The translations under genes were made by a program, and so were the position numbers. From NCBI RefSeq assembly GCF_000009045.1, contig NC_000964.3:682001-746000 (forward strand): 64,000 nt of DNA, written 5' to 3'. This DNA is from Bacillus subtilis subsp. subtilis str. 168 (lineage in GTDB: Bacteria; Bacillota; Bacilli; Bacillales; Bacillaceae). Of the stretch, positions 3,004-55,602 are shown piece by piece (position 1 is the stretch's first letter; every line of letters starts with the position of its first letter). Under the pieces are notes generated by a model. That model had not been told where the DNA came from. It ran no database searches and saw only the letters and a program-made list of their open reading frames with translations.

Positions 3004-3120
3004 TTTCATCTGTCCTTATCTAAATTTTCCAAATTGGTACTATAGTTAATGACAATAAGGACGTGATGGTTACAAAAAATCTTCGTGCTGCAGCCCGCCC
3101 GAAGAAGAAAATAACAAAAT

Positions 3121-3142
3121 CCTAAACGGCAGGCCGTTTAGG
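3121..3142 (-). terminator. Hairpin downstream of gabP
   Basis: CCTAAACGGC-AG-GCCGTTTAGG perfect stem 12 bp after the gabP stop, followed by ATTTTG on the minus strand. Confidence 0.7.
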
Positions 3143-3154
3143 ATTTGATCAGCA

Positions 3155-5834: not shown

Positions 5835-5859
5835 TGGAGCTTCCTGTCACAGGAAGCTT

Positions 5860-6035
5860 CAGCGTGTCGACAAACCCTCGCATTCGTTGTCAGGTCTGCG
5901 CTTCGGTGCTCACGAATTAGAACATTCGCTCCGCTCCTATGCTCGTCCTTCCTAGACTTCAAGGGTTTTCAATCACGCTGAAAAGATGACAAAACCCTAA
6001 AATGAAAGCCATTTTAGGATTTTGTCAACAATCTG
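5860..6035 (+). repeat. Dispersed structured intergenic repeat, copy 1 (176 bp)
   Basis: Near-identical to 54146-54320 and to the reverse complement of 55371-55545. CAG...CTG ends; flanked by 23-bp direct repeats GAGCTTCCTG(T/C)CACAGGAAGCTT at 5837-5859 and 6036-6058. Confidence 0.92.
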
Positions 6036-6062
6036 GAGCTTCCTGCCACAGGAAGCTTTTTT
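6036..6062 (+). terminator. Intrinsic terminator (second copy of the duplicated mneS hairpin)
   Basis: AGCTTCCTG-CCA-CAGGAAGCT stem followed by a T-run; the first copy (5837-5859) lacks the T-run. Confidence 0.75.
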
Positions 6063-12384: not shown

Positions 12385-12443
12385 TTGTATTGTTTTTTCA
12401 AAATGAACTTGGTACAATAGACACAGAAATCAAATAAGATGAA

Positions 12444-12510
12444 TTCGTATAATCGCGGGAATATGGCTCGCAAGTCTCTACCAAGCTACCGTAAATGGCT
12501 TGACTACGTA
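12444..12510 (+). ncRNA. Purine riboswitch aptamer, guanine-sensing (pbuG leader)
   Basis: TCGTATAATCGCGGGAATATGGCTCGCAAGTCTCTACC...CCGTAAA...GACTACG matches the purine riboswitch consensus; discriminator is C (12504). Confidence 0.95.
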
Positions 12511-12579
12511 AACATTTCTTTCGTTTGATATAAATAAAACACGGTTATTTATTCAAACTGAAATCCGTCTGTAGTCAAG

Positions 12580-16365: not shown

Positions 16366-16387
16366 AAACATGAAATCAAAACACGAC

Positions 16388-16455
16388 CTCATATAATCTT
16401 GGGAATATGGCCCATAAGTTTCTACCCGGCAACCGTAAATTGCCGGACTATGCAG
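16388..16455 (+). ncRNA. Purine riboswitch aptamer, guanine-sensing (purE leader)
   Basis: CTCATATAATCTTGGGAATATGGCCCATAAGTTTCTACCCGGCAACCGTAAATTGCCGGACTATG; discriminator is C (16448). Confidence 0.97.
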
Positions 16456-16519
16456 GAAAGTGATCGATAAAACTGACATGGATATATCGCAGAAGCGAAC
16501 GACTGACGATACATGTACC

Positions 16520-54113: not shown

Positions 54114-54120
54114 AAAACAA

Positions 54121-54145
54121 AAAGCCTCAGCTCTGCTGAGGCTTT
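54121..54145 (+). terminator. Hairpin after swrC, directly abutting repeat copy 2
   Basis: AAAGCCTCAGC-TCT-GCTGAGGCTTT; the T-run is cut short by the repeat start (CAG at 54146). Confidence 0.65.
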
Positions 54146-54320
54146 CAGCTTGTTGAAAAACCCTCGCATTCGTTGTCAGGTCTGCGCGTCGGTGCTCACG
54201 AATTCTACATTCGCTCCGCTCCAATGCTCCCCCTTCCTAGACTACAAGGGTTTTCAATCAAGCTGAAAGAATGTTAAGGATGACAAAAGCTCAAAACAAG
54301 AATCAGTTTTGAGCTTTTGT
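54146..54320 (+). repeat. Dispersed structured intergenic repeat, copy 2 (may extend to CTG at 54333)
   Basis: Shares AAACCCTCGCATTCGTTGTCAGGTCTGCGC...CCTTCCTAGACT.CAAGGGTTTTCAATCA.GCTG with copy 1; second hairpin ACAAAAGCTCAAAAC / GTTTTGAGCTTTTGT. Confidence 0.9.
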
Positions 54321-54435: not shown

Positions 54436-55347
54436 ATGAAACGTGCACGCATAATATACAATCCGACTTCAGGACGGGAGATCTTTAAAAAGCATCTTGC
54501 CCAGGTCCTGCAAAAATTTGAACAAGCCGGCTATGAAACCTCCACCCATGCGACGACATGCGCAGGAGACGCTACACACGCTGCCAAGGAAGCGGCATTG
54601 CGTGAGTTTGACCTGATCATTGCGGCAGGCGGAGACGGAACGATCAACGAGGTCGTCAACGGGCTTGCGCCTTTAGACAATCGTCCGACACTCGGTGTGA
54701 TTCCTGTCGGCACAACGAACGACTTCGCCAGAGCGCTCGGAATCCCACGCGAGGATATTTTAAAAGCGGCAGATACGGTCATTAACGGCGTTGCCCGCCC
54801 GATTGATATCGGACAGGTCAACGGCCAGTATTTTATCAATATCGCCGGCGGAGGCCGTCTGACGGAGCTGACGTACGACGTGCCAAGCAAACTGAAAACA
54901 ATGCTCGGCCAGCTTGCTTATTATTTAAAAGGAATGGAAATGCTGCCTTCACTTCGTCCGACAGAAGTCGAGATTGAATATGACGGCAAGCTGTTTCAAG
55001 GTGAAATCATGCTGTTTTTGGTCACGCTGACAAACTCCGTCGGCGGGTTCGAAAAGCTCGCGCCGGATTCCAGCCTGAATGACGGCATGTTTGATTTGAT
55101 GATACTAAAGAAAGCAAACCTTGCTGAATTTATCAGGGTCGCCACGATGGCGCTTCGCGGAGAACACATCAACGACCAGCACATTATTTATACAAAAGCG
55201 AACCGCGTGAAAGTCAATGTATCAGAAAAGATGCAGCTGAACCTGGACGGCGAGTACGGCGGCATGCTGCCGGGCGAATTCGTGAATCTGTACCGGCACA
55301 TTCACGTCGTCATGCCGAAGGAGAAAGCGGAACAGTTGGATGACTAA
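54436..55347 (+). CDS. dgkB: Diacylglycerol kinase (YegS/DgkB family), 303 aa
   Basis: NPTSG, GGDGTINEV, PVGTTNDFAR and DGE motifs. Formerly yerQ. Confidence 0.93.
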   Translation: MKRARIIYNPTSGREIFKKHLAQVLQKFEQAGYETSTHATTCAGDATHAAKEAALREFDLIIAAGGDGTINEVVNGLAPLDNRPTLGVIPVGTTNDFARALGIPREDILKAADTVINGVARPIDIGQVNGQYFINIAGGGRLTELTYDVPSKLKTMLGQLAYYLKGMEMLPSLRPTEVEIEYDGKLFQGEIMLFLVTLTNSVGGFEKLAPDSSLNDGMFDLMILKKANLAEFIRVATMALRGEHINDQHIIYTKANRVKVNVSEKMQLNLDGEYGGMLPGEFVNLYRHIHVVMPKEKAEQLDD

Positions 55348-55370
55348 AACTTGGCTTGGTAAGCCAAGCT

Positions 55371-55545
55371 CAGAATGTTGACAAAATCCTAAAACAGTTT
55401 TCGTTTTAGGATTTTGTCATCTTTTCAGCGTGATTGAAAACCTTTGAAGTCTAGGAAGGGCGAGCATCGGAGCACAGCGAATGTTGAATTCGTGAGCACC
55501 GAAGCACAGGCCTGACAACGAATGCGAAGGTTTGCCTACACGCTG
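55371..55545 (-). repeat. Dispersed structured intergenic repeat, copy 3 (175 bp, inverted)
   Basis: Reverse complement aligns end-to-end with copy 1; flanked by imperfect direct repeats AAACTTGGCTTG...GCCAAG at 55347-55370 and 55546-55570. Confidence 0.92.
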
Positions 55546-55602
55546 AAACTTGGCTTGAATAGGCCAAGTTTTTCTTTCGCTTAAAACTAGAGGTGATTAT
55601 AG

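Follow-up and report, generated by a model that had tools for sequence, protein, structure and literature searches.

Hairpins and terminators are targeted without a primary-sequence consensus by IS1272 and TnSha1, two members of the IS1182 family, and for both, partial or complete deletion or replacement of the stem-loop has been reported, with no duplication (PMC4923244, PMC5678879). Both papers cite a review in which some IS1182 members are said to target palindromes (PMC4923244, PMC5678879). The data described here serve a transposon family for which a review of 2018 lists the transposition mechanism as unknown (PMC6199540). Among the named members of this family, ISBpu1 comes from Bacillus. 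Direct repeats of 0–60 bp are reportedly given for the family in ISfinder. Other systems resemble the element studied here in part. Like the bacterial MITEs of the Correia, RUP and ERIC types, it is a small intergenic element without genes that occurs in multiple copies, has terminal inverted repeats and a target duplication and shows insertion polymorphism, and it would likewise depend on a related IS; the duplications of those elements are usually of a fixed 2–9 bp, whereas here they are of 21–34 bp, set by the target stem-loop and dyad-symmetric. Group IIC introns and REP-targeting ISs of the IS1397/ISKpn1 type also use stem-loops or terminators as safe landing sites. However, the introns retrohome to a position after the hairpin, which is not duplicated, and the ISs insert in the loop with duplications of 3–4 bp (PMC1525189, for the context of REP targeting); unlike the present element, neither makes a second copy of the entire structure.

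The stretch of DNA analysed (the window) comprises 64,000 nucleotides, positions 682,001–746,000, of the B. subtilis 168 genome and contains three copies of a short repeat. The original prediction had the strings and coordinates of these copies exactly right, and its gene names fit the flanking genes, whose products are a CDF transporter, an RND permease, a diacylglycerol kinase and a methyltransferase of the RlmD type. The repeat is a MITE of about 175 bp, without genes, that belongs to the IS1182 family. It does duplicate hairpins, and does so generally, but the transposon family to which it belongs is already known, if little studied. The 1997 paper of Kunst et al. on the B. subtilis genome reportedly listed a 190-bp element repeated 10 times, in two subgroups, and is said to have described it only as a repeat, with a possible RNA structure. 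The present element is, we assume, probably this "190-bp element"; the two are alike in copy number (about 11), in size, in falling into two subgroups (a short form, and a long form to which a module is added), in intergenic location and in their presence in related bacilli. A literature search that left most subscription literature outside its reach found no paper naming the 190-bp repeats as IS1182 MITEs or describing whole-terminator duplication in Bacillus, and nothing specific on a Bacillus MITE derived from IS1182.

The element measures 169–178 bp, or 198–231 bp in its long variant, and is overlapped by no ORF of 120 or more codons. Its inverted ends have the form CAGnnTGTnGACAAA, and each is backed by a hairpin. 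When 45 distinct copies were aligned, the conserved terminal inverted repeats, read inward, were CAGCGTGTCGACAAA (end A) and CAGATTGTTGACAAA (end B). In the same alignment the first seven bases of end A pair invariantly with CACGCTG about 115 nt further inside, and the 16-bp subterminal hairpin of end B is kept by compensatory changes, four of its positions showing 2–5 standard pair types each. An internal helix has compensatory changes as well, and hairpins dominate the sequence of the element. The features of the three window copies are collected in Table 1.

Table 1. Copies of the element in the window, with their ends and the terminator hairpins beside them.
Feature	Coordinates	Strand	Remarks
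Left mneS (CDF transporter) terminator hairpin	5837–5859	+	23-bp target-site duplication
MITE copy 1	5860–6035	+	176 bp, short variant, no ORF
Copy 1, end A (CAGCGTGTCGACAAAC)	5860–5875		pairs with CACGCTG at 5974–5980
Copy 1, end B subterminal hairpin	arms 5987–6002 and 6012–6027		
Copy 1, end B (...TTTGTCAACAATCTG)	6021–6035		
Right copy of mneS hairpin	6036–6058	+	loop "c", derived; original T-run follows
swrC (RND permease) terminator hairpin	54120–54145	+	left, sole hairpin copy at MITE copy 2
MITE copy 2	54146 to ~54316	+	end A intact (CAGCTTGTTGAAAAACC)
Copy 2, own subterminal hairpin	5′ arm 54282–54297, 3′ arm 54306–54320		
dgkB terminator hairpin, dgkB-proximal copy	55347–55370	+	24 bp; derived loop (gtaa), one stem base changed
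MITE copy 3	55371–55545	−	175 bp, reverse orientation; end B at 55371, end A at 55545
Copy 3, subterminal hairpin	arms 55379–55395 and 55403–55419		
dgkB terminator hairpin, rlmCD-proximal copy	55546–55570	+	25 bp; same as the single hairpin of empty sites; T-run follows

Copies 1 and 3 had been described as lying between duplicated whole hairpins, and this was borne out by near-identical pairs at both: the two 23-nt hairpins of copy 1 differ at one loop base (t/c), and those of copy 3 have kept their stems, apart from one base, and differ in their loops. In all three window copies the CAG end of the element adjoins the 3′ arm of a hairpin, with TT(T) as the last bases of that arm, again as described. 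About 11 copies were found genome-wide by BLAST of copy 1 against the whole genome. The association of the other copies with hairpins, which had been predicted, was found when the flanks of the 11 were compared: at 9–10 of them the two flanks carry imperfect copies of one hairpin, which is a different one at each copy of the element. Among 40 relatives searched, the element was present in 20 of the 24 genomes of the same genus, often at 20 or more places each, and absent from all 16 genomes of other genera of the order.

For scoring, 60 copies with their flanks were taken from four species, and each copy was scored by the best match of the last bases on its left side to the first bases on its right. 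Fifty copies from five Bacillus genomes were delimited by the end pattern, and 300 mismatched pairings of left and right flanks served as control. The score exceeded the control maximum (13) in 45 of the 50 delimited copies, with an observed median of 22. The hairpin duplications of these 45 were 21–34 bp long (median 25), with stem-loops of 7–14 pairs. A convincing duplication was absent from the other five (L053, L081, L092, copy c6 of B. subtilis 168 and its orthologue L049); c6 and L049 have clear but diverged hairpins, with scores of 11 and 13. Flanking hairpin repeats were also seen, with scores of 17–29, at 18 copies that the end pattern had missed, mostly through a mutated last base, and that were delimited by alignment; 20 further copies from five more genomes had the same hairpin repeats. 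From this second batch L116 and L119 (mis-delimited) and L135 were left out. L135 (G024) is a complete MITE between two unrelated hairpins, as expected after recombination of two copies. A search of plasmids returned four matches; three of these (CP063894.1, NZ_CP078511.1 and NZ_CP078512.1; 82–88% identity) are labelled Klebsiella or Stutzerimonas, are probably mislabelled or contaminated, and were not used.

The boundaries of the duplications are symmetric about the dyad of the hairpin, exactly in 28 of 45 cases and within 1 nt in 39. The duplicated sequences are unrelated between copies, their length varies with the size of the stem-loop, and the targets have no sequence in common beyond A-rich and T-rich feet. 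With over 80 insertions of the MITE and 10 of ISs, and with empty sites for several, the collection forms a large natural data set from which a rule can be read: the duplication is the hairpin, symmetric about its dyad. For annotation, look-alike terminator pairs about 175 bp apart mark such insertions.

Empty sites were compared using one genome per species. The mneS–yeaC spacer lacks the element and has exactly one hairpin in seven sister species, in which the flanks are 86–96% identical, and this hairpin has the loop base of the left copy in B. subtilis 168 (loop "t", which is thus the ancestral state). The dgkB–rlmCD spacer is empty in five sister species, with one hairpin, the same as the rlmCD-side copy, and the swrC–dgkB spacer is empty with one hairpin in three. 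Elsewhere in the genome, c2 and c4 were each empty in all five species checked, with a single hairpin, and c6 was filled in three species and empty in one. Because the orthologous sites are empty and have one hairpin, the element must have inserted and duplicated that hairpin. Empty alleles of this kind had been predicted for the three window spacers; together with the lack of relatedness between copies, they also uphold the proposal that the duplicated sequences are target-derived. The hairpin at c6 (409005) carries the MITE in B. subtilis 168, G004, G010 and G022, and in the orthologues L113 (G012) and L115 (G013) the same hairpin is occupied by another insert, which measures about 1.1 kb or 0.3 kb. 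Since different inserts are found in it across genomes, this hairpin is a recurrent landing site.

Copy 2 had been noted to follow the swrC hairpin without a duplicate. This is so, and the terminal repeat of its end B is absent together with the right hairpin copy; the subterminal hairpin of the element joins the original downstream flank at a microhomology of 9–10 nt (GAGCTTTTGT in the element, GAGGCTTTTGT in the target), which leaves the end of the element uncertain by about 6 nt. The right end and right hairpin look to have been lost by a secondary deletion. The missing duplicate is accounted for by this loss of the right end and is not a failure of the rule. The orthologue of copy 2 in G004 (L095) has the same odd junction and differs from copy 2 only in its central module, where a 68-nt Bacillaceae-1 motif stands in place of 14 nt. 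In the B. subtilis 168 genome this module is what sets apart the long variants c7, c10 and c11; Rfam family RF01690 (Bacillaceae-1) matched these three and the G004 orthologue of copy 2 with 55–63 bits. The motif thus lies inside long variants of the element family, whereas the three window copies, all short variants, had no match to this or any other Rfam family. An orphan Rfam motif is thereby located within a mobile element. The difference between L095 and copy 2 suggests that modules have been exchanged between dispersed copies. We conjecture that exchange of the central module would also account for the 98% identity of c1 and c2, whose duplications have diverged. In G013 (L096), the swrC–dgkB spacer contains the MITE and, between it and the swrC stop codon, about 1 kb of additional DNA.

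Of 49 genomes of the genus, 24 had intact IS1182 transposase genes that scored above the cut-off of the NCBIfam model, often 5–12 copies each. In the B. subtilis 168 genome no intact IS1182 transposase was found; there were fragments only, with a best E value of 9e-6. Two transposases scored 480–481 bits with NF033551 (cut-off 270) and were also matched by the Pfam families DUF772, DDE_Tnp_1_6 and DDE_Tnp_1. Ten full-length ISs were delimited; they are 1504–1559 bp long with a single ORF of 450–477 codons, and all start and end with CAGnnTGTnGAnAAA, each end folding back as a hairpin. All ten are flanked by whole-hairpin duplications of 15–31 bp, nine of which are perfect and one of which has a single loop mismatch. 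The original prediction had set the behavior of the repeat apart from that of ordinary ISs; this part does not stand, as full-length IS1182-family members of sister species make the same hairpin-length duplications. The ends of one IS (L024, in G017) match those of the MITE at 16 of 19 and 14 of 16 positions. BLAST comparison of the MITE with full-length IS loci gave no similarity beyond the short ends, the matching terminal repeat being of about 16 nt; MITEs usually share no sequence with their partner IS beyond the ends. At two loci, L022 (G050) and L070 (G017), a full-length IS is nested in the hairpin copy beside a MITE. MITEs were also present in genomes without an intact IS, and ISs in genomes without MITEs. 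The matching ends and the common target rule point to a putative mobilization of the MITE in trans by an IS1182-type transposase.

The element is thus like the IS1182 family in its terminal inverted repeats of about 16 nt, in its hairpin or terminator target and in the DDE family of its putative partner, and differs in being gene-less and only about 175 bp long. Hairpin targeting has already been published for this family, and the gain here is one of detail and scope, not of kind. Behavior within the family is not uniform: the staphylococcal IS1272, like TnSha1, is reported to delete part or all of the hairpin, whereas the Bacillus ISs and the MITE duplicate it whole.

None of the six duplications scored in B. 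subtilis 168 was perfect, versus 22 of 39 in the IS-bearing genomes G010, G017 and G003. Judged by their sequences, the B. subtilis 168 copies are old, and its MITEs are orphans of a transposase that the genome no longer has. Dispersed repeats of a model bacterium usually called IS-free, long without explanation, would then be fossils of IS1182-driven transposition. Differences within hairpin pairs lie mostly in the loops, and the loops of terminators also vary between species at empty sites. Since loops vary at empty sites and recent insertions are perfect, the loop differences are attributed to drift with conservation of the stems. Error-prone insertion chemistry was considered as their source and rejected, given that nine of ten ISs and 22 of 39 MITEs have perfect duplications. 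A greater divergence of the hairpin on the end B side than on the end A side was also considered; it held for c1, c2 and c3 and not for c4, and four cases are too few.

Taken as a whole, the observations are very probably best explained by an IS1182-type MITE that captures a terminator hairpin and whose insertion duplicates the whole hairpin. The transposase would bind the CAGnnTGTnGACAAA ends, each backed by its hairpin, and capture a palindrome as its target, which in practice is an intrinsic terminator. It would join both 3′ ends of the element to opposite strands, symmetrically about the dyad and at or near the feet of the stem. Each flank would be left with a single-stranded hairpin, and gap filling would copy it entire, placing the element between two hairpins, of which the downstream one would retain the T-run and still terminate. 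In a model put forward for IS1272, joining of the ends at the 5′ feet (pathway b) leads to the entire stem-loop being duplicated (PMC5678879). As a stagger of 15–34 bp is hard to fit to a fixed B-form spacing, we infer that the target is an extruded cruciform, a four-way junction at which the feet of the stem meet and which accommodates such a stagger naturally. A more far-reaching and tentative proposal, which we regard as doubtful in its entirety, is that this clade of the IS1182 family integrates at the cruciform four-way junction with a constant geometry, the duplication (15–34 bp) being the hairpin, and that the hairpin of end A serves as a cargo slot in which RNA modules such as Bacillaceae-1 are swapped. 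If true, this would be a case of junction-guided DDE integration, with terminators as renewable safe havens.

The present data fit a cruciform or a single-stranded hairpin as target, and the latter gives the first alternative, in which the same element and enzyme would act on a hairpin in single-stranded DNA, at the lagging-strand template or in a transcription bubble, and copying of the hairpin-bearing strand on both sides would yield the duplication. The orientation of the element follows the direction of replication in 10 of the 11 copies of this genome and in 67:29 copies pooled from six genomes (G000, which is B. subtilis 168, and G003, G004, G010, G017 and G022), as might be expected of such a target; however, the pooled counts include orthologous copies, the genes are themselves strand-biased, and G017 is almost unbiased (11:9). 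Orientation also follows the terminator T-run weakly, at 21:14 with 10 ambiguous, figures that amount to no clear preference. The dyad-symmetric boundaries, which involve both strands, are more simply fitted by a two-fold symmetric duplex or cruciform, and single-stranded targets are not known for DDE enzymes of this superfamily. Overall, we consider this alternative rather unlikely.

The conserved helices invite another reading, namely that the repeat is a family of structured small-RNA genes with their own flanking terminators and is not mobile. Several helices with compensatory changes, the presence of Bacillaceae-1 in the long variants and the coverage of the element by RNA-library contigs would agree with it. 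Conserved helices are, however, also expected of end hairpins that bind a transposase, an RNA cargo is compatible with a transposon, and the window copies have no Rfam match. The flanking hairpins, moreover, bear no relation to one another from copy to copy, and empty sites already have them singly, and the terminal inverted repeats are common to the element and the IS, so that an immobile gene family is very improbable. Least probable of all, to the point of being negligible, is a non-DDE mobilizer (an HUH transposase of IS200/IS605, a REP-associated tyrosine transposase or a group IIC intron): all three associate with stem-loops or terminators, but such systems lack the target duplications and terminal inverted repeats that the element has, Rfam gave no intron or ribozyme match in or around it, and the IS that co-occurs with it, and has its ends and its target rule, carries the gene for an IS1182 DDE transposase. 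An IS200/IS605-type element was rejected on its own account as well, given the inverted repeats, the long duplications and flanks that share only a preference for T-rich and A-rich feet.

In the preferred reading, that of an IS1182-type MITE duplicating its target hairpin, the terminator of the host gene is regenerated downstream of the insertion, and the structure-targeted insertion with this outcome that had been proposed agrees with the dyad-centred duplications and with the fate of the two hairpins. The upstream copy has lost its T-tail and has no terminator score on the gene strand, and the downstream copy keeps its T-run and scores. At copy 1, the element replaces the T-tail of the left mneS hairpin, for which there is no call on the + strand, and a terminator-like call with a T tail was obtained at 6035–6059; the right mneS hairpin is the regenerated terminator. 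The hairpin of end B of the element itself also scores as terminator-like. On read-through into the element, two raw-read RNA runs gave 0 reads on the stretch, and the RNA-library contigs do not reveal transcript ends such as those of mneS. From these predictions the upstream gene probably gains a 3′ UTR longer by about 200 nt and would still terminate; the insertion may cost the host little, close to the "nearly harmless" outcome originally envisaged.

Two further features of the window were recorded. A terminator-like hairpin at 3113–3147 has a 10-nt core (AAATCCTAAA / TTTAGGATTT) in common with the hairpin of end B; no terminal repeat adjoins it, and it could be a chance likeness or a remnant. 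Two purine riboswitch aptamers (RF00167, 86 bits each) lie on the + strand at 12425–12526 and 16369–16470.
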